A stretch of DNA of 58,625 nt, the filler included, from Bipalium vagum (lineage: Eukaryota): assembly GCA_037834085.1 (NCBI GenBank). It is 3 parts of 3 records of this genome, joined end to end, with 100 filler letters (N's around TTAATTAATTAA, not from the genome) between each part and the next. Parts side by side here need not be neighbours in the genome. Positions count along the whole stretch, not along the records: positions 37,051 to 58,625 come from JBBMKC010235154.1; 2 more parts are not named here. The stretch is one strand, 5' to 3'. The position numbers were made by a program, and so were the translations under genes. Under the pieces are notes generated by a model, which saw only the letters and a list, made by a program, of their open reading frames with translations, was not told the origin of the DNA and ran no database searches. Shown in pieces: positions 38,634-57,560 of this stretch (position 1 is the first letter of the stretch; each line of letters starts with the position of its first letter).

Positions 38634-41600
38634 TTAATGCTTCAATTCTATTAGACCACTATAATCGGTAATCGATTGCAAAGAGTTTCCAGTCGCGACC
38701 TGTACATCATTGTTTAAGTCTAAAATCCATTGCCGACAACAAATCTGAACGTCCTTTACAAATTTACAGAATTCCAGCGATGTCGATTCTTGCAAAATGA
38801 CTTTCGATACACCGGTGTCAATGTCAAGCTCTACAAGATAAGACACTCTGCGAGACTCATCCATTACATGGACGAGTAGTGTTTTGCGGAATGACAGCTT
38901 GCCAGTTGCCATTCCAAGACAATGTATGACAACCTCAGATTGCATGTCCGGAAACCAAGATCCACTCTAAAATCAATATCTTTATCTTAAAATTTTAATA
39001 AGAATATCGACGGTCTCAAATAAACAATTATATAAAATTAAAGACTTGGAAATTTGTAAAATAATAATAATTACTTAATGTTCCATTTCGTGTTTAAAAT
39101 AAACAATAAATTTACTCGGTTAAAAGTGCAATAATAATTTTATTTAGGTCAAAATTGCTAAAACAATTAAATATCTTGTTGAAAACTAAAGATAATGATG
39201 TATGATAAGAAACTATATTCCTAATACAAAAAAATTAAGAATAAATATAAAATAACAATAAATAATATTATTAATTATAATATTAATAAATAAAATATAA
39301 CTAAGCTAATAGTCAAAATAAAATAGTAATAATAATAGTGATTGAAGGTGATAGTGATATGACCAATAATAATAATAGTCGATGATAATAATAAAAAATG
39401 ATAAAAATTGAAATTGTGGTGAAATTGAATTCTGATGAAAATCGAACACACTGGAAAGAAGAATTTATCAGATCAAAAATGATTATTAAAAAAATAACTC
39501 TTCAGTGACTATTTGTAAAGTTTATTTTTCATTCAGTAGTAATCGAATGAATTGATAGGATGTTTGCTAATATGTATTTCTTTTTATTTGTGGTCTCATA
39601 GCGACCGAACCAAAAGAAAATCATTGGAGTCCAAGAGAAATAATAGACAGTTTGAGTACCATGGGTAAAAATAAAATTTAGGTAATATTCTTTCGAATAT
39701 TATCATTTAATTTTAATTAAAAATTTATGAAGCGTAGAAATCGAAATCTGGTGAGTTCTATTTTAAAAAAGAGCGCTCTGAAAATTTCCTTTGTGGAAAT
39801 TGTTTTTTCATTTTTATGAAATAAAATTTTATTACCATTTATAAAAGTTATAAAGTAATTATAAGCTTCATGCAAAATAATTTTATTAAATTACTAATTT
39901 TTATATTTTAATGATTATTTTTTATAATTACTATAAAGTATTATTTTCTATTATATAATAATTATTATTATATCATTCTTTTCTGCTTTGCATTTATATT
40001 GCAACTATAACATATTTTTTTAAAGAACCAATGATTCTCAAATATCATGCATTACAAACCTGTGACCTCAAGAGAATGAATTTATGAGAATGGGTTATCC
40101 TCAGACTCTCGGTACCTAAAATCTTATATTTTATTTATTGACATAACCATTCAAGGGAAAAGCAATTTATCTCCCATAATTTATATATTCTCTTTTGTTA
40201 AATAAAGAAACACTTCTTTCGGTAACAGAATTTGAAAATTTTTATTTTTTGCTCTATCGTATATTTTTTCATATTAAATTCCCAAGAATTAAAGTTAATA
40301 AATCTCTTTGTTATTCAATTTCTAAATAGGAAAGTGACTTATGGGTCTTCCTGTGATAAAAGGTCTAAATAAATTTTAAACTAAAAATAGAATCACAAAA
40401 CAAATTATTTTTCGAACAGACAATTGCCTAAATTAAAATAAAATCTAAAACTTACCGATGAGAATTTTAAAAACCCAAAACACTCACTTTCAAAATTCCG
40501 CAAAATAACGAAATTATTCAGAAATGAAAAACCCAGTCTAATAATATTCGACCATTAATGAATACGAATAAAAAAAATCAATAAAAATATATCGATTAAA
40601 GTCGGCAATTTTTAAATTGAAAATGAAATTAAAGAAAAATTGAAAATTTACATTTATGACCAATTCTTCCGTCACAATTGTCGCCAATTTTGTCGTCTCT
40701 ATCGTCGCTCCGGCACCGTCTGTGACCCACTGGTAACTATTACTGCCATCGGCATTGGACGAGCCCAAGATCTCGCCATGAATCGAGTCGTAGTCAAAGT
40801 TGGCAAATGAGGAATTGTGCTTGCAAAGTATCTGAATACGGAGAATTGGAAATCACTTTTTCTCAATGGAAACCGAGGAAATTTTTCTCAATCAAGAAAA
40901 TCGATCACGAAACCTTACCAGGCTCTGATATGAGGCCCCAATATCGTTGAGGAACGATTTTTTGTTACACGGTCGACAAGTCAACACCGATTCACGTTCC
41001 ATCAACAAAACTCGGTTGAATTTAGTGGAATTAATTGGCGTTTTCTGGGAAACAGTGTGAGATCGATTGATAATTTCTTCCGGAAGTTCTTGGTGACAAT
41101 TGCATTCGCATTGGTTATCGTTAACAATAGTCACGGTCGATTTTGTCAGACACAGTTGGCATTTGTCTTGAATAGACGATCGCAACGGTCTCAAGCGAGC
41201 CTGTCGACATTTCTCATTGATATCCACATTGTCAAAGAAACAACTGCACTCGTTTTCGATAATTTTATTGTTGAACAGCGAAACGGAAAATGGAAACATG
41301 GATTTCGGATATTTACAATGTTGAACGCAATGGAGATTGTCGACAAATTGCATTGTGATAAAACGAATGTTGCATTCACAATCGCCGATAACAATGACCA
41401 ATGTCTGGTCCTGGTGGTAGATTGTGATGACCTGGTGAAACTTGTCCGTGTAATTTAATTGGGAAAGTGGCAACTGATAGGACTGCTTAGCAATCAAACC
41501 GTGTCGGTCACATGATTTTGATTGGCATTTCGAACAATGGAGTCGAGGTAAATTGCCAAATAAAATCACCAGAATTTCACAGTCCATTTCAGTGATGAGG

Positions 41601-41959
41601 AAAACAAAGAGGTCCGGATTGACAACATTCTGGTAGAAGTGAATGTGAATAAGGGACTGTTGAAATTGTCCCAGGTGGATTTGGTGGAACACTGTCATCG
41701 GGCTTCCATTCAATGGAGTTGTATTGAAATTCAGATAGAGATTGGAATAAGAATGAATGTAAAAATTTTCCGTGTCCAATTGTTCAGATGTCACGCTGAT
41801 TATGAATTCACAATTGATAGTTAAACCCAAGAATATATCATTCAAACGGGTATCGTGCAATTTATCAGATAGAGAAAAGGAATAGAGAGGTTTATTCAGT
41901 TTCATATTTCCAGAATGTTCTCTTTTATAAAGCGAATATAACAAATTATATTTCTTCAT
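38634..41959 (-). CDS. DCAF15: DCAF15-like (DDB1- and CUL4-associated factor 15), divergent
   Basis: Exon 41959-40919 (ATG, 347 codons, GTAAG donor), exon 40831 to about 40650, probable small exon(s) including 40115-40060, and last exon 38966-38634 (TAA). Colinear motifs versus remembered human DCAF15: IFLGLTINCEFIISVTS/IFLGFSKCGRYVLSYTS; PRLHCSKCQ..CDRHGLIAKQSYQ/PGRCAACQ..CLRHGFMLHTKYQ; WVTDGAG/VVTDLRG; LDIDTGVSKVI/WDLNTGIFETV; TGNSLQSITD/KGCSLKVLAD. Internal exon structure unresolved. Confidence 0.72.
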
Positions 41960-42609
41960 CAAGTGGAATTCAGTGGGAAGACAATCGATAAATTATATAA
42001 AAGTTTTCCAAGGACATATAACCAATATTAAATTTATATTGAATAATTATAAATATTTAAACAACTTAATTAATTCCAAATATTATTATTATAATTATAA
42101 TACTCTAATTATTATCTAAAATTGCCAAAAACACTATTTTTTTCCTGAACATAAATATAAATAAATATGATCTAAAGAAATTATAATTTTATTTTTAATA
42201 TATTACTCTAAAACTTGAAATATTTGCCAACCCTTTAATAATACCCCACCACGTGGAAAATATTGATTTTTAGCGGCGAAAAGATTAATGCCCCATTGGC
42301 AATTATTTCAAATGGCGTCTTACAGTATCCAAAAATTATTCTGAATTTGACTGAGTAGCAGGACCTTTCCAAACATAGCCATCACTCAGGATTTTCAGCA
42401 TGTCCATAACATTTCAAAATTTCAATAATTAATTATTATTATTATTAAATTATATTAATTAATATATTGCAAATTATTATTATTATTAAATTATTATATT
42501 ATAAATAATTTATATTTATTTATCTATATTTCTATATTTATTTTTATAATAAGTCACAGGTTCTTTTCTTCTATTTATATTTTTCTATTTTTAGATATGC
42601 CTGTTCCAT

Positions 42610-44453: not shown

Positions 44454-47400
44454 ATGGCGAAACAGTAATCAGTTTTTCCTTTACATTTTGTGCTTATTTT
44501 GTGCTTATTTTGTGCAAAGGCAATTCAGAGCTTTTAAGAAATGTTTGTGGGAAGGCGACTTCGTTGGAGTGGAAAAGCATTTGGAGGATTCGTTCATAGA
44601 TAGAATTGTTGACGAATTAGAGGTTAAGTAAAATGATTACTATTATTATCTGAATATGATTGACAAATTCACCGTTACTCTCTTTCTGAAAGGGTTCTAG
44701 TGGCGTTTAGAGATATTTAGAATGCTCTAAAGATATTAAAATCGATGTTTCCATTGATAAGGATGAACCTCCTTCTCCCGAATTGTTGAAATGTCCTTCG
44801 ATATTGGTCGTCCTCGGACAAAATACATCAATTAGAAATTTGTTTCCACTGGCCATGTCAATGATTGTTACTGAAGTCTCTTCTCAGAGTCAGTTCTCTT
44901 TTCAAGTCTCTCCTTTTTTGTATAAGGAAGACGGACGAAAATTTTGAGTGATTGTGAGAAAGGTGTTAGCCAGTGTCTCAGATCTTTGAGCAGGTAAACC
45001 CTCCGGTTTTTGATCATTATGATGTGCATTGAAGTCTTTAGAGAAAGGATGATCGTATTTCCACGTTCAACGAACTGTCCCTTATTCTATCATTATCATT
45101 TAAAAGTGTTATTATAGTGTTACGATATAATTATTATTGTCAATTTCTTTCTCTCTTTTTTCTTTGAAACCGGAACGGTTGAATTATAACAGGATTTTCA
45201 ATTTTTAGTCACATTGGCGAAGAATGAAACAATTTTTATTTTAGGGACAGAGACCGATTCATGTGGCTTGTCTGAGAGGTCACTTTGAAATAGCAAAATT
45301 ATTGATCGAGCAAAAATGCGACATCGAAAAGAAAGATAGAAATGTAAATAATTATATTATTGATTTAAAATTTTTATCAATATTATTATTATGATTATAA
45401 TTTTTATTATAATTTTAATTATTATTATTATTATTTCATTTAACTATTATATTATTTCTATGAGTAAAAATATTGAAAATATAAAAATAATTATCTTAAT
45501 TATATTATTATTATGGTATTATAGATTTTACTTTCATATTGTTACCATATAATTATTTTTATTTGTGGTAATTTTTATTATCATGATCTTTTTGTCTTTT
45601 TTATCTTTGAAACCAAAACGGTTCAATTATAAAAGGATTTTTCTTTTTTATTCAAATTTGCGAAATAATGAAACAATTTTTTATATTTTAGGGATGTAGA
45701 CCGATTCATGTGGCTTGTCGGAATGGTCACTTAAAAATAGCGAAATTATTGATCGATCTAAAATGCGACGTCGCTGTGAGGACCAAAGTGAGTCGAATAA
45801 ATTCTAAGCAGAAAAATTCTTTGTCTTCCCCAAAAAATATCGATTGTCTCAATTTCTGCCCATCCATACATTGACCATTTCTCTATTATTTTTCGCAGGA
45901 CGGAGAAACTCCGACGGACTTGGCAGAAAAAGGTGGTCACACTAAAATCGCCAAACTGATTCAAAATATCGTCGAAGTAATAATATTATTATTTTATTAT
46001 TATTTTGATATTATTTATTGTAATTGACCAAAAATAAAAATCATTTGATAAATCAAAAAACCCATTCGATTGGTTTTCTGATTCTGTTCCACAGGACATT
46101 CGTTACCTTAAAGAGGTGATGGCAAATGGTAGTGAAGACTCAGCACACGTTCATTTCTGCCAAGAGGTGATTTCATTTTCTCATTGATGTTCATGAGATC
46201 CCCTGTTCAGATCCTGCTCTACAAATCCATCAGAGACCATCACCAAGACGGATTCCAGCTGTCATGTCGTGCCGACGTCGTCAATGGAAACCTTGAAATT
46301 GTAAACATTCTCAACAATATATTTGTTCATTGATTTCCGCTTAGATTCAGTGCTCCTTCTTGGAACTGGCTGCGGAGCACGGGAGTTCTCTTTTCGTCGA
46401 AGAAATCTTGAAGAAGACCGTCTTTGACAGAGAGGTGAGGGAGGCTGATGGAATGAAATGTTTTCTTTATTTTGATGAGGTCTTTTTCATATTTTAGACA
46501 TGGGACAGAGCCAAAGTGATCGCAAGAGAGAAAGACCACGATCAAATATTTGAGACAATATTGAGAAGAGAATTGTTGTTAGGACTAAGAGAAAAAGTAC
46601 ATTTGATGCTATATTTTCTTTATTATCGATCTCAACAATTTCATTGAAGGCAAAGTTATCGATTTTGCACACTGCTGTCATCGAAAATGATTCTGACATG
46701 GTTGACTTCATTCTGAGAAAAGGTGACGTCGATCCCAACTACAATCATGAAGTGACAGAAATATTTTTAGCGCCGTTCATTTTAATTGGTCATATTTTTT
46801 TTCAGAATTATGGAACTGCTCTGGCAATGGCCATTGGCTTGTGCAATGAAGAATGTCTAAGAGTGTTTGAGAAGTCGTCTATTGATTGCAACACCCGAAA
46901 CAAGGTTTATCAGTTATACATTTGAAACGGTTATCTGTGTGCTGTTCAGTTCTTGCAAGGTCCTCTCCATGATGCCATTTTAAATGGAATGATTGATCAA
47001 TGTCGATTTGTGATCGATCGTATTGAAAATGTGGACGAAAGAGGATTTGTGAGTTCTTTTTCAAACAGTGTCATGTGATTCTATTCCTCTAAGATGGGTC
47101 AAACCGCTCTGCATTGTGCTGTGATGAAAGGGTGCGAGGATCTTTGTGAGGAGTTGATGAAGAGAGGAGCAGATTGCAGAAGATCCATGGGGGTAAGAAA
47201 TGGAATAGTTTTCCTTTTCTGTTTTATATTCAAATTTAATTATTATCATTATAGTTATTATTAATTTAATTAATAGAGAATATTATTAAAGCTTTTTTCA
47301 TTTTCAGTTCTTTCAGAATGCTCCGGAAAACGAAAGTACGTTTCATACTCTCTTAATTTCATAATTTTTTCTGTTCTTTGAAATGATTCTGATCTTTTAC

Positions 47401-49081
47401 TTTTGAAGTGTTCCGTCCAAAGTATTTAAGCATTACTTAGAATTCTTTCCAATGTTCAGAGTCGTTGAATAAATAAATTCATTTCAACTTTTGTTTCTCA
47501 CAGATCCATTTCCACTGACATCTAAGGAGAACTGTTTCACGTTATGTATGAAAAAGAACAGGACGATCTATCCCTGTTTCATTAATCGATTGGATGAAAC
47601 CATTTCCAATAGTCGCGACGATCAAGGGAACTCCTTGCTCCATTTCGCGGCGAAACTTTTAAATAAAGAACTCTGTACCACTCTGATAAAAGGCGGAGGA
47701 ATAGTGGATGCCGAGAACAACCAAGGAAGAACTCCGCTGTACGAGTTTCTGTCCACTTTGGATCGTCAAACATTTATCGAAGTTTTTAATAATTATTTCT
47801 GTTTCGGTCAAAAGTCATTTTATTCGGCTTAGAATGAGGAAAGGGTCATTGAGGTCGTGGAAGTATTTGTCCAATCAGGATGCGATCTGAGAAGACGTTT
47901 GCAGGGGAATGTGTCTCTTTTTCAAATGGCTGTGAGCTTGAACTCTGAAAGGTTTATCGATGTTTTATTTGGTTCTAATATTATTGAGAATTTGTTATTG
48001 AGTATTGATTACAAATATGTTCAGATTATTGCTAGCTCTTCTGTCGGCCAACGGAGATCGGTCGCTGGAGATTGATGAAGAAATGTTGAGAATTGCTGTA
48101 GAGAACGAATTCTTCACTTTCTGTCAGTCTTTTTTGAATAATTATCCCGAAGATCAGTTAAAGTTGAATATCTCTCCGGATACTATTGAAATCGTTCTTC
48201 GACATGGCTGCGCAGACTTATTAAAGTCTTTCATACTAAAAGCCAATGACAGAGTTCAGCAAATAGTTTTAGAATCATCCTTATATCGTTTATCAAAATT
48301 GAATGCTCAGGAATCTTTTGACAGTTTACTCAATATTGAAGTGAAGTATCCGTTGTGTCTTCCAAACGGTGAAACACTTTTGACAAGGCTGATGAAAGAA
48401 AACGAAGTTTATTTTTATAGAAAGCTCATGGAAGCAGAGAAGAGTAAAAGTAAATATATCAATATGAGAAATGAGACGAAACAAACGCCTTTACAAGTGG
48501 CTATTGACTTAGAGTCGATGGAGCTCGTGCAAGACCTCATATTTGAAACCCATCAATTGGACAATGAAGACGACAAAGGCTGTACTGCTTTGAGCCAACT
48601 TTTGGAGAAAATATCGCAGTACGATGATGTAATTCTTTTGGTGAATGGAAATATTTTCTTACTTTTTATTTAGAAGCAGCGACACTTTGGATTTCTTAAT
48701 GCAGTTAAAACAATAATAATGAGAGGAGGCAATATTTACCACGAAAATTCGAAAGGAAAGCAAACAATTTGTTTTTGTTCTAAAAACGAAATAAAGGGTG
48801 AAATAGAAAAATTTTTCCAAAAGAATGCTCCGAAAGAAAAGACTTTTGAAAAGCAAGATATTGTAGAGAAGGAAAAGATTGTTGTGATGGAAAAGATTGT
48901 AGAGAGGGAAAGGATTGTCATAGTTAATGAGAATCAAATTTGTGGAATATGTTTGGATAAAGAGATTTGTTTGGCTTTGGACTGTGGCCACACAATTTGT
49001 GACATTTGCAACGAGGGAATTGTACTGTGTCCATACTGCAGACTAGAATCAGGTCGACCAAGGAGGATCTTCCTCAACTGA
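44454..49081 (+). CDS. ankyrin-repeat protein with C-terminal C3HC4 RING finger (putative E3 ubiquitin ligase)
   Basis: Exons 44454-44464, 44520-44622, 45245-45343, 45692-45787, 45899-45976, 46095-46166, 46211-46300, 46345-46434, 46498-46596, 46650-46751, 46806-46904, 46950-47048, 47094-47192, less certain exons at 47.3-48.0 kb, about 48025-48628, and 48674-49081 (TGA). Ankyrin motifs GQRPIHVAC, GQTALHCAV, GNSLLHFAA, GRTPL, QTPLQVAI. RING: CGICLDKEICLALDCGHTICDICNEGIVLCPYCR. Confidence 0.88.
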
Positions 49082-50779: not shown

Positions 50780-51838
50780 TGCACAGTTTGTGTGGTTCTT
50801 TCTGTGAGATTTCTTTCTTCACAATGACAAAAATGTAGTTTAATATACCTCTCATCGTTCATTCTTTTTAATAATTTTAAGTCACTTTCCAGATTTAATG
50901 ATAAAGAAGTTCAAACTCAGATTCCCGTAGTTTTTTCACACTAATTTGTGCATTGTGTGGTTTAGCGTTGTCTAGCATTAAGATAGGAATCGATTTGGGC
51001 TGTTATTTTAAAAGTTTTTTCATTATATCGCCCAATTGTTTGCAGTATACTTCTGCCGTAATCGATGATCTAGGTTTCATGAAATGAAAAATGATAATTC
51101 CTGCGCTAGACAACCAAAAACTCACTATCAGCTTCTACTGGTGAATTTTTGGCTTTGATGTGTGTTTTGGTTCTTCATTCTTGACCAGCCATTGTACTGA
51201 ACGTTTGTGATTGTCATATTTGATTCATTTTTCAGATTTATGACGAGAAAATAATACCAAACAAGCTTCCAAACGCTTTAATTTCTGCTGTTCATTGAGT
51301 TCATGCGAAGCCCATTTATCCAACTTTTTCACTTTATCTATTTGAGATAAATGACATAATAAAGTTTTCTTACTGATACCAAACTTCAAGGATAATTCAT
51401 GGGCACTTTGATATGGACCAGACTAAAAGGTGATCTTTACATGGTCATTACACCTTCGCTTCTGGACTACCGCATGGTTCATTTGTGAGGTCAAATTGTT
51501 CTTTTCGAAATTTAGCAAACCAAATTCCACCGTCTGATGTGTAGTCACACTGCAGCCAAATACTCAATTAATATTTTGCGCGTCTGTGATGCTGTAGTTT
51601 CTCGTAAGAATTCATATTTTATGATAATTCAAATTTCTGCTTCTTCCAATTTCAAATAATTTCATTAAAAGAAATATTTGTTATTATCAGTTAAAGATTA
51701 TATTGATTTGTTTAACAGGGGAAAAATTAAACTTTCTAATAAAAAGACTGAATGATAAAATATGAAATCATTGTTAAATAATCAGCTGTTATAATTGACA
51801 ATGTTTAACATAAAATTTTCATGTGACGACCCAGTATA
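50780..51838 (-). mobile_element. degenerate mariner
   Basis: IIIKYEFLRETTAS, WFAKFRKEQFDLTNEP, KKLDKWASHELNEQQKLKRLEAC, YDNHKRSVQW, LMLDNAKPH. TIR-like TATACTGGGTCGTCACATG at about 51820-51838. Confidence 0.88.
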
Positions 51839-54106: not shown

Positions 54107-55612
54107 ATGATGTCCAGGTTGGTCGACTTATTTAACGGTCATAAAATGCCCCGTCTTGGTTTGGGAACGTGGCTGGTATATTAGTATAAAATGTAAGTAT
54201 GGTACTGATTCTGAAATAGTTGAAAACAGAAGAGGTGCACGGAACCATACGAAATGCATTGAGCTTGGGATACCGACATTTCGACTGTGCTTGGATATAC
54301 TCCAACGAAAAAGAAATTGGAGAGGTTTTAAAAGATGAAATGAAGTCGGGAGTATGTAAAAGAGAAGACCTTTTCATCACGACCAAAGTTGATTATTGAT
54401 AATATCGAATTGAGAATGACTTCAATTGATTTAGGTGTGGAACTCCTTTCACAGAAAAGATCTGGTCCCTGTTGGGTTTGGAGAGTCTTTAACCAATCTC
54501 AAGCTCAACTACGTGGATTTGGTTTTGATTCATTTCCCAATAGCACAAAAGGTTAAAACATTAATTTTCCAATCGAAACGCGTTGAACAAATATTGAATT
54601 ATCTTCAGCCAGGAAATCATTCCGCGGAAGAAAAGGGTTTCAAGGACAAAATTGATGATGTTGATCTGATAGAAACGTGGAAGGTCTTCTTCTTCATTTT
54701 AATATTAATATTTTCTTTTGTATTATTTAAATGAGGAAATAATCAATAAAAATAATATTTGTCGAAAAGCACTGTTATAATGATTTTTTAAAATAAATTT
54801 AATAATAATAATAATAATAATTATAATAATAATAAATGTCAATTTTGATTATTAAGTATTATTATTGTCCCACACCAGGCCATGGAATCCTTGGTGGACG
54901 AGAAAAAGGTCCGGTCCATTGGAGTGTCGAATTTCAACATTCGCCAAGTGCAGTATATCTTAGGTAACTGTCGCATTAGACCAGCCGTTAATCAAGTATG
55001 TCGCAAATGACCGTTCTCTGAGATTATTCTTTCAAATAAGATTGAAGTCCATGCTTATCTACCCAATAAAAAGCTGGTGGCTTTCTGTCTGGAAAACAAT
55101 ATCCAGGTGACTGCTTATTCGCCATTAGGAGCAGCAACTGATACACCCCATGCATCGCAAGATAGTCGAAAACCTCTAGAAGATCCCGATGTCTTAAGAA
55201 TATCTAAGAAACTTGGAGCCACCCCAGCCCAAATTTTACTCAGTTACATTATCCATAGAAACCTGATTTGTATATGTAAATCGAAGTCTCCGGCTAGATT
55301 GGCTGAGAATATGAAGGTGAAATATGATTGACTTAAAAGGTGTTGAGATTTAACTTCACAGGCATTGGACCTCCGATTGCCGGAAGAAGACTTCCACGTT
55401 CTTAACAATCTCAATGTTTTCCATAGAATGGTTGACCCCAATGTGTAAGTTAACATTCTATGATGTACTTAGATGATGGACTTTGAGGTTTGTCGTTTTG
55501 ATTTGTTTTGGATGCTATGTAGACAATAAATTATTCTCCACTTTATACATCCTAAATACTTTATTGATTAAAGTTCGAATGTAGACATCAGAACTGGTTC
55601 ATCCATTACTGA
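54107..55612 (+). CDS. aldo-keto reductase family 1-like, complete, 8 exons
   Basis: Exons 54107-54175, 54220-54387, 54435-54551, 54609-54683, 54879-54995, 55041-55316, 55362-55444, 55585-55612 (TGA), all phase compatible. Motifs [73 protein letters not shown]; catalytic D/Y/K/H tetrad intact. Confidence 0.95.
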
Positions 55613-56849: not shown

Positions 56850-57560
56850 TTCAGTACCAAGAATTTTACTTCTACTTTAAAAAACTGGCAATTTCAGGGT
56901 TCACTCGCAATCCGGCTTCTTTTATTTTTTTTTAATACCCTATCCAGCCTTATGTAATGTTGTTCGATGTTGTCTGAGAATACCAAGATATCATCCAGAT
57001 ACACAATTGTTCCTTTCAAACCACTAACTACTTTATCCATAATCCTTTGAAACGTCCCTGGAGCAGCTGCTATTCCAAACGACATGCGATTAAAACAATA
57101 TTGACTTGCTTTGTTGAAAAGGTCGTCTTTTCTTTTGACTCTTCATCCAATTCCACTTGGTAATAGGCGTTTCCTAAATCAAATGAACGGAAATATTTTG
57201 ACCCACTTAATTGATCTAGCATCTCATCAACATTTGGCATTGGGAAAGCTGGTCTTTTCGTTATTGCATTGAACTGTCTGAAATCCAACCATAAACTGAT
57301 TTCCTGCTAATCTTTTTTCCACACACATATTAAAGGCGTGTTCCACGGTGATTGACATTTACTAATTATGTCATTCTTATGAAGTTTGTTTATTGCTTTA
57401 TTGATCTTGTCTTCTAAATTCATCGGCTGTCTAAATGGATTAATATTAATAGGATTACCCGTTGTTTTTATGTTATGCCGAGCTAAATGAGTGCATCCGA
57501 TGTCCCACTTATCAGCCATAAAGGAGTCAATTGTTAAATTTTATTATAGATTTGAATTGG
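56850..57560 (-). mobile_element. Ty3/Gypsy reverse transcriptase relic (frameshifted)
   Basis: Three frames: HNIKTTGNPI..SPWNTPLICVWKKD; DFRQFNAITKRPAFPMPNVDEMLDQLSGSKYFRSFDLGNAYYQV; MSFGIAAAPGTFQRIMDKV...VYLDDILVFS. Confidence 0.93.

Follow-up and report, generated by a model that had tools for sequence, protein, structure and literature searches.

The window analysed here is a stretch of 58,625 nucleotides (nt), filler included, from the genome of Bipalium vagum, and the part considered below is a 21.6-kb piece (positions 37,051-58,625), to which all copy counts and scans within the window refer. The piece is A/T-rich (about 20-39% G+C) and of eukaryotic origin. On its plus strand lies a gene of 18 exons and roughly 854 codons that encodes ankyrin repeats and a C-terminal RING finger (Table 1); all introns are GT-AG, most are 44-63 nt long, and no internal stop interrupts the gene, in which the spliced exons A to Q form 816 codons and the stop falls at 49081. 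Near the 5' end, two neighbouring exons, A and B, each encode a single ankyrin repeat and are preceded by similar intron sequence. An earlier interpretation made without any database (hereafter, the sequence-only reading) had located and translated both exons correctly and had regarded them as cassettes of a modular, diversifying recognition surface attached to an E3 ligase, possibly an immune or surveillance receptor. The analysis presented here suggests that the pair probably arose by ordinary duplication or conversion of a repeat exon in an ankyrin-RING ligase, with no specialised diversification mechanism. Diversifying selection on A and B is not demonstrated, and the differences between them look like ordinary random mutation.

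Both exons are ankyrin repeats in their own right, with Pfam Ank (PF00023) scores of 30.6 bits for A and 31.6 bits for B against a gathering score of 21.1, and they differ in length by one codon (99 vs. 96 nt). Their likeness extends into the introns that precede them, and the common upstream intron segment of approximately 130 nt described in the sequence-only reading was recovered: BLASTN aligns 45128-45326 with 45569-45773 over 205 columns at 82.4% identity (E = 4e-54), and the core of the intron (45128-45244 vs. 45569-45691) contains 99 matches, 18 mismatches, and 3 indels. A repeat search returned two direct repeats, one of 94 nt (spacing 447, 86% identity) over the acceptor and most of the exon and a second of 79 nt (spacing 443, 81% identity) farther 5' in the intron; in a MAFFT alignment, weaker likeness reaches back to approximately 45114/45536. 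Adjacent exons of the same phase with alignable flanking intron constitute a tandem exon duplication, with the caveat that the homology stops 15-18 nt short of the 3' ends of the exons. The likeness ends within the exon, at approximately 45326/45773: there are 12 differences in the first 81 nt (85% identity) and 10 in the last 15 nt (Fisher p = 9e-5), the final 18 nt of exon A are unrelated to exon B, and the downstream introns of the two exons cannot be aligned. Therefore, there is no clean cassette of an intron plus a whole exon, and the earlier proposal that intron and exon were duplicated together holds only for their recent common ancestry, not for the entire exon. The ancestry is recent because identity at third codon positions is far higher between A and B (0.81) than with repeats of the same subtype from another gene (0.37-0.56).

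A count of further cassettes had also been proposed, and within the piece it yields A and B only: no additional copy was found by BLASTN (word size 7), by TBLASTN, or by a six-frame scan with a profile built from A, B, and the repeats of a related environmental transcript (L001, described below), in which exon C gave only a weak generic match. The middle of the A-B intron is not part of the homologous tract and has no counterpart downstream of exon B. Tandem Repeats Finder reports arrays of period 3 and 21 in it, at 45370-45457. Simple repeats of the (ATT)n/(TAT)n type occupy this segment and also 45984-46016, at the start of the intron that follows exon C; these two introns are far longer than is usual in the gene because they are filled by such repeats.

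The case for diversification was built on codon counts, which were reproduced exactly: a residue is replaced in 13 of the 32 aligned codons (8 within the first 27), and only codon 17 (GCA/GCG) is altered in a purely synonymous way. The divergence is thus nearly all amino-acid-changing, as had been stated, but the excess is no greater than chance would produce. By the Nei-Gojobori method, the 27 well-aligned codons contain 10.8 replacement differences on 63.7 sites and 1.2 silent differences on 17.3 sites, which corresponds to a ratio of nonsynonymous to synonymous rates (dN/dS) of 2.5 (Fisher p = 0.44); it falls to 1.37 (p = 0.77) when all 32 are taken. When 12 random, unselected substitutions were placed on either exon in a simulation, a mean of 2.0-2.5 silent and 7.9-8.4 replacement codons resulted, and one silent codon or none was obtained in 27-40% of trials; the observed 8:1 split is what unselected mutation is expected to give. 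Divergence is also the same in the intron core (18/117, 15.4%) and in the first 81 nt of the exon (12/81, 14.8%; Fisher p = 1.0). Where A and B differ in residue, the eight repeats of L001 are variable too (mean of 3.5 vs. 2.1 residue types per column, Mann-Whitney p = 0.008), a coincidence with generically variable positions that would be expected of any constrained framework with a free surface. Indeed, the framework residues (G, P, H, A, G-H, L-L, C-D) are kept in both exons. For the exon as a whole, replacements do not significantly outpace silent or neutral change, as they would under positive selection, and a literature search returned no paper that connects ankyrin exon duplication with positive selection.

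The gene into which A and B are built can be followed from a plausible start codon in exon 1, which is joined in frame to exon 2 (MAKQ-QFRAFKKCLWEGDF...), through to the RING finger. Exon 2 has counterparts in two related proteins, at residues 46-74 of P0107 and residues 11-31 of L001, in both of which it precedes the repeats. Exon C likewise corresponds to the caps GMSPLDLAKKFNRAKCVQLL of P0107, DGRTPLDIAKAGNRKDCMELL of P0006, and GFTPLDFAKLEKHQDCLDFF of L001. Exon A runs from repeat position 4 to position 3 (33 residues), exon B runs from position 4 to position 2 (32 residues), and exon C opens with D-G, that is, positions 3 and 4. Read directly, the joining of A to B to C keeps an exact 33-residue register, whereas joining A to C would add one residue. 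Farther downstream, the length is exactly 99 nt in exons H, J, K, and L and 102 nt in exon I, in each case approximately that of one repeat; therefore, the rule of one repeat per symmetrical exon applies to the central stretch as well as to A and B.

Table 1. Positions of the exon pair A/B, the tract they share, and the other features of the ankyrin-RING gene
Feature	Position	Strand	Description
Exon 1, putative first coding exon	44454-44464	+	ATG GCG AAA CA, 11 nt; donor GTAATC, 55-nt intron, pyrimidine-rich acceptor
Exon 2, N-terminal capping ankyrin-like helix pair	44520-44622	+	Encodes QFRAFKKCLWEGDFVGVEKHLEDSFIDRIVDELE; AG/GT borders
Upstream intron segment, copy 1 of shared tract	45114-45244	+	Aligns with 45536-45691
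Exon A, single 33-residue ankyrin repeat	45245-45343	+	Phase 0-0; borders AG and GTAAAT; ...ttttag acceptor
Middle of A-B intron, non-homologous	45344-45535	+	192 nt, 92% A+T, mostly (ATT)n-like simple repeats
Upstream intron segment, copy 2 of shared tract	45536-45691	+	Same alignment; insertion of ~20 nt near 5' end
Exon B, single 32-residue ankyrin repeat	45692-45787	+	Phase 0-0; borders AG and GTGAGT; ...ttttag acceptor
Exon C, C-terminal capping repeat of first ankyrin module	45899-45976	+	DGETPTDLAEKGGHTKIAKLIQNIVE; phase 0-0
Remaining exons after C, whole span	46095-49081	+	
Exon D	46095-46166	+	GT-AG introns
Exon F	46211-46300	+	GT-AG introns
Exon G	46345-46434	+	GT-AG introns
Exon H	46498-46596	+	GT-AG introns
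Exon I	46650-46751	+	GT-AG introns
Exon J	46806-46904	+	GT-AG introns
Exon K	46950-47048	+	GT-AG introns
Exon L	47094-47192	+	GT-AG introns
Exon M	47317-47335	+	GT-AG introns
Exon N	47504-47781	+	GT-AG introns
Exon O	47833-47951	+	GT-AG introns
Exon P	48025-48628	+	GT-AG introns
Exon Q	48674-49081	+	GT-AG introns
C-terminal RING finger	48932-49045	+	C-x2-C-x10-C-x-H-x2-C-x2-C-x6-C-x2-C, spacing read directly

The attachment to an E3 ligase, as claimed in the sequence-only reading, agrees with the domain match at the C-terminus: residues encoded by 48926-49078 score 27.7 bits with zf-C3HC4_3 (PF13920; cut-off 27) and contain eight zinc ligands in the C3HC4 order, which places the domain among RING-type E3 ligases and makes the gene product a putative ligase whose activity is predicted from this match. 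The 51 C-terminal residues resemble RING structures of the IAP family in the PDB, with BIRC7 at E = 5.7e-8 and XIAP, cIAP, and MIB1 RING3 also matched (IAP-family range 5.7e-8 to 1e-5). Best matched are the IAP RINGs of BIRC7, XIAP, and cIAP1/2, proteins that likewise end in a short-loop C3HC4 RING; however, the IAP family is defined by at least one BIR domain, which the window gene lacks, the rest of its protein consisting of ankyrin repeats. In Mind bomb proteins (MIB1/MIB2), too, the ankyrin repeats are followed by an IAP-type C3HC4 RING at the C-terminus, and MIB1 RING3 is one of the PDB matches, but these proteins carry MIB/HERC2, ZZ, and REP domains in front of the repeats, whereas the window gene has a single RING. 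No MIB/HERC2, ZZ, REP, or BIR domain was detected in a Pfam scan of the homologue P0006, in the domain annotation precomputed for P0107, or in the scanned exons of the window gene (nor BIR in the homologue P0007), and for P0006 and P0107 the domains consist of ankyrin models and zf-C3HC4_3 only. The overall plan of N-terminal, substrate-binding ankyrin repeats and a RING also recalls the plant XB3/XBAT ligases; nevertheless, the RING_XB3-XBAT31 model scores 13.2 bits against the required 50, the genome is animal-like, and there is no sign of common descent. Since the MIB/HERC2, ZZ, and BIR domains are absent and the XB3-type RING is unmatched, the gene appears to encode an ankyrin-RING ligase of its own lineage-specific family and belongs to none of the Mind bomb, IAP, and XBAT groups.

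Members of this family are few and unannotated. The ESM Atlas yielded generic ankyrin clusters only. An exhaustive HMMER protein search with a 223-residue stretch over exon P (window 48002-48670) matched a small family of unannotated proteins and no protein at more than 43% identity. One of them, P0006 (774 residues), is colinear with the window gene over 46208-49078 at approximately 30% identity, and the homologues P0006, P0007, and P0005 all exceed the zf-C3HC4_3 threshold, at 30.4-36.2 bits. The environmental contig L002 has the same exon-by-exon layout with short introns, but its sequence breaks off approximately 570 nt 5' of exon F and does not reach the cassettes; another contig, L003, is too short to serve as an orthologue for dN/dS. 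A word search with P0006 led to P0107, an ankyrin-RING member of 614 residues with an N-cap, four repeats of the same subtype as A and B, and a cap. L001 (metagenome record Ga0247628_1000963) is the sole contig, among the metagenome contigs scanned, with the degenerate R-P-I-H-V-A-C...G-H pattern (two matches). It is a polyadenylated environmental transcript (L001:73-2133) of a complete 686-residue protein: after the N-cap come eight tandem repeats of the A/B subtype, then a cap, a helical region, and a C-terminal TIR domain (TIR_2, 75.7 bits); its sole close relative, P0156, has seven such repeats. The ankyrin-TIR proteins (L001/P0155 and P0156) have in common with the window gene the N-cap, the repeat subtype G-x-R-P-I-H-x-A-C-x-x-G-H ... 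C-D-V/I-E, the cap, and the post-cap region, but they have seven or eight repeats instead of two and a TIR domain in place of the long degenerate ankyrin region and the RING. Residues 75-342 of P0107 are colinear with residues 206-476 of L001, an alignment that takes in repeats, cap, and post-cap region; thus, the N-terminal ankyrin module is common to proteins that end in a RING and proteins that end in a TIR domain. Because the module contains two repeats in the window gene, four in P0107, seven in P0156, and eight in L001, it is expandable, as is usual for repeat proteins, and the description of the surface as modular is borne out at the level of the family. An extra ankyrin-like exon (T-G-L-x-x-L-(D/E)...I-x-D-K) lies between the counterparts of exons D and F in P0006, P0107, and L002, while the window gene has only a 44-nt intron at 46167-46210. 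Thus, repeats have been gained or lost at the exon level elsewhere in the ankyrin-RING family too.

Within this context, the most probable account of A and B is a simple one. The two exons would be adjacent, constitutively spliced internal repeats, so that the N-terminal domain would read N-cap, A, B, C-cap. Recent common ancestry, at approximately 0.17 substitutions per site, unites the two over a segment of approximately 210-230 nt, in which some 130 nt of intron precede the first 27 codons. This segment might have been copied by tandem duplication, after which the last five or six codons would have been remodelled, possibly restoring the register. Alternatively, two older repeat exons that already lay side by side might have come to share it through non-allelic gene conversion or unequal exchange. 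Conversion or unequal exchange seems slightly preferable to duplication because the homology halts abruptly in the exon and because each tail resembles a different family-typical tail: over the 27 residues, A and B are 70% identical, as are B and repeat 2 of L001, and the tails of A and B have none of five residues in common, each being 33-40% identical to other tails of the family. After copying, the exon as a whole would have diverged at the rate of the intron, with the framework under purifying selection and the surface positions free, and the outcome would be an ordinary internal expansion or homogenisation of the repeat array. Tandem internal duplication is the accepted route of repeat-array growth (Bjorklund et al. 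2006, PMC1553488). The duplications surveyed there resemble the present case in that a repeat and its flanking intron have a recent common ancestry with a neighbour and in that repeat number varies (2, 4, 7, and 8 here), and a copied exon would be tolerated because the exons are symmetrical in phase. However, ankyrin repeats are usually duplicated several at once in that survey (PMC1553488), whereas the window gene involves a single repeat and a homologous tract that ends within the exon, an indication that conversion was partial or that remodelling followed.

Several considerations weigh against this account. That A and B are both constitutively included is something we only infer, and conversion and duplication appear to be inseparable from present sequences. 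Furthermore, the sequence-only reading had pointed out that the changes Q/C and LR/RN affect the target-contacting positions randomised in designed ankyrin repeat proteins (DARPins). In the mapping made here, Q/C, L/R, and R/N fall at repeat positions 5, 13, and 14, which is consistent with the published randomised residues 46, 48, 56, 57, 78, 79, 81, and 89 (PMC3602593). The codons of these three binding-face positions hold 6 of 9 possible nucleotide differences, which is faster than the neutral proxy given by the 15% intron rate (binomial p = 7e-4, Fisher p = 1.5e-3) and than the remaining exon, where 6/72 nt differ (p = 2e-4), approximately half of the intron rate. Such an excess would be compatible with some positive selection. 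The signal is confined to three codons singled out post hoc, which are too few for a claim of selection. Runs of adjacent changes are present in the intron as well (GG/AA, CAA/TCT), and when adjacent changes are counted as single events, the binding-face p value becomes roughly 0.01-0.04 by a hand estimate. The excess is a lead rather than a result. Nor is the parallel with DARPin libraries in itself informative: A and B resemble them in the order of N-cap, internal repeats, and C-cap and in differing at randomised positions (5, 13, and 14; 33/2/3 in the tail), but DARPins are synthetic, and natural arrays vary at these positions since they are not needed for the fold, so that the coincidence is expected and shows no selection.

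The binding-face excess nonetheless carries the strongest of the competing interpretations, which is that diversifying selection drove A and B apart on the target-contacting face and that they form a variable recognition surface of an E3 ligase acting as a surveillance or immune-type receptor. This is unlikely. It would account for the wholly different hairpin-loop tails of A and B, and it is in keeping with the variable repeat number of the homologous module, with the joining of this module to a TIR domain in L001 and P0156, the N-terminal half of L001 being colinear with P0107, and with the existence of at least seven paralogue clusters, all of them from UniParc only. However, the whole-exon dN/dS is non-significant and its pattern is reproduced by unselected mutation, exon and intron have diverged equally, the variable positions are those of any ankyrin array, and only two copies are present in the piece. 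The difference between the tails is better accounted for by the end of the homology tract within the exon. A functional tie to immunity is not apparent, and the idea of an immune or surveillance receptor is speculation, for which the only circumstantial point is the fusion of the same N-terminal ankyrin module to TIR in an environmental transcript.

A broader version of the same idea would place A and B in an unannotated, lineage-specific family of "sensors" in a small-intron invertebrate. Its members would consist of an N-cap, two to eight R-P-I-H-x-A-C repeats whose number changes by exon duplication or conversion, a C-cap, a concave face that evolves faster than neutral, and a RING or TIR effector, with an innate-immunity-like role. 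Taken as a whole, this picture is improbable.

Tandemly duplicated exons are often alternatively spliced, and A and B could in principle be mutually exclusive or independently skippable exons, which would yield isoforms with equal repeat number and different binding surfaces. The two are suited to this in being adjacent, symmetrical in phase 0 (99 and 96 nt), and provided with good splice sites. Moreover, the conserved intron element next to the acceptor of A (45224-45245) and a site upstream of B (45551-45574) are each approximately 82% complementary to a single A-rich site (46022-46049) in the intron that follows exon C, a pairing loosely like that of competing selector and docking sites. 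Such RNA pairing was discounted as a sign of mutually exclusive use: the segments are A/T-rich, 1.6 kb of sequence contain 30 pairs of this kind, and chance is the likely origin. Alternative use of A and B is very unlikely for other reasons too, since inclusion of both keeps the frame and the exact 33-residue register, while passage from A to C adds a residue, and since the intron similarity (85%) is no higher than that of the exon, leaving no specially conserved regulatory element. The one sequencing run in which the sequence was located is not catalogued as RNA. Relatives speak in the same direction. The polyadenylated L001 transcript has eight tandem repeats and P0107 has four; therefore, repeats of the A/B subtype are included together in mRNA, and the register of A-B-C together with the transcripts and models of relatives with four to eight tandem repeats argues that both exons are constitutively included. 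Finally, it is very unlikely that one copy is a decaying or unused pseudo-exon with replacements due to lost constraint, as overall exon divergence equal to that of the intron and a dN/dS indistinguishable from 1 might suggest, because both copies retain all framework residues, intact splice sites, and an open frame, differ outside the three surface codons at only about half the intron rate, and are required for the canonical register with exon C.

If duplication or conversion is accepted as the origin of the pair, A and B may serve as a textbook case of the growth of a repeat protein, in which a symmetrical one-repeat exon is copied or converted next door together with its intron. They also provide a lesson, namely that replacement changes may far outnumber silent ones across some 30 codons without this being evidence of selection. 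The pair would acquire greater weight if the wider family, in which a module of two to eight repeats is combined with a RING or TIR domain, were a true variable receptor family. All that is known of this wider family comes from unnamed database entries and environmental contigs, and the family-level picture of variable repeat number and RING/TIR fusion is the only part that deserves to be followed up.

Other features of the same piece can be mentioned briefly. On the minus strand, an uninterrupted, cysteine-rich open reading frame (ORF) of 356 codons occupies 40892-41962, where the G+C content of the piece is highest; no Pfam model matches it, and it may be a single-exon gene of an unassigned family. 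A short minus-strand frame at 51225-51389 (...KVKKLDKWASHELNEQQKLKRLEAC...) looks by eye like the DNA-binding portion at the N-terminus of a mariner-type transposase and likewise has no Pfam match. At 56894-57519, also on the minus strand, three consecutive short frames broken by stops or frameshifts resemble by eye a reverse transcriptase of the Ty3/gypsy type and are probably a decayed retrotransposon. Such mariner and gypsy remnants, taken with introns of 44-63 nt and a G+C content of about 30%, would tentatively fit a small invertebrate. Exons of an aldo/keto reductase gene lie on the plus strand at 54435-55331, where Pfam Aldo_ket_red scores 33.9 bits for 55077-55328.

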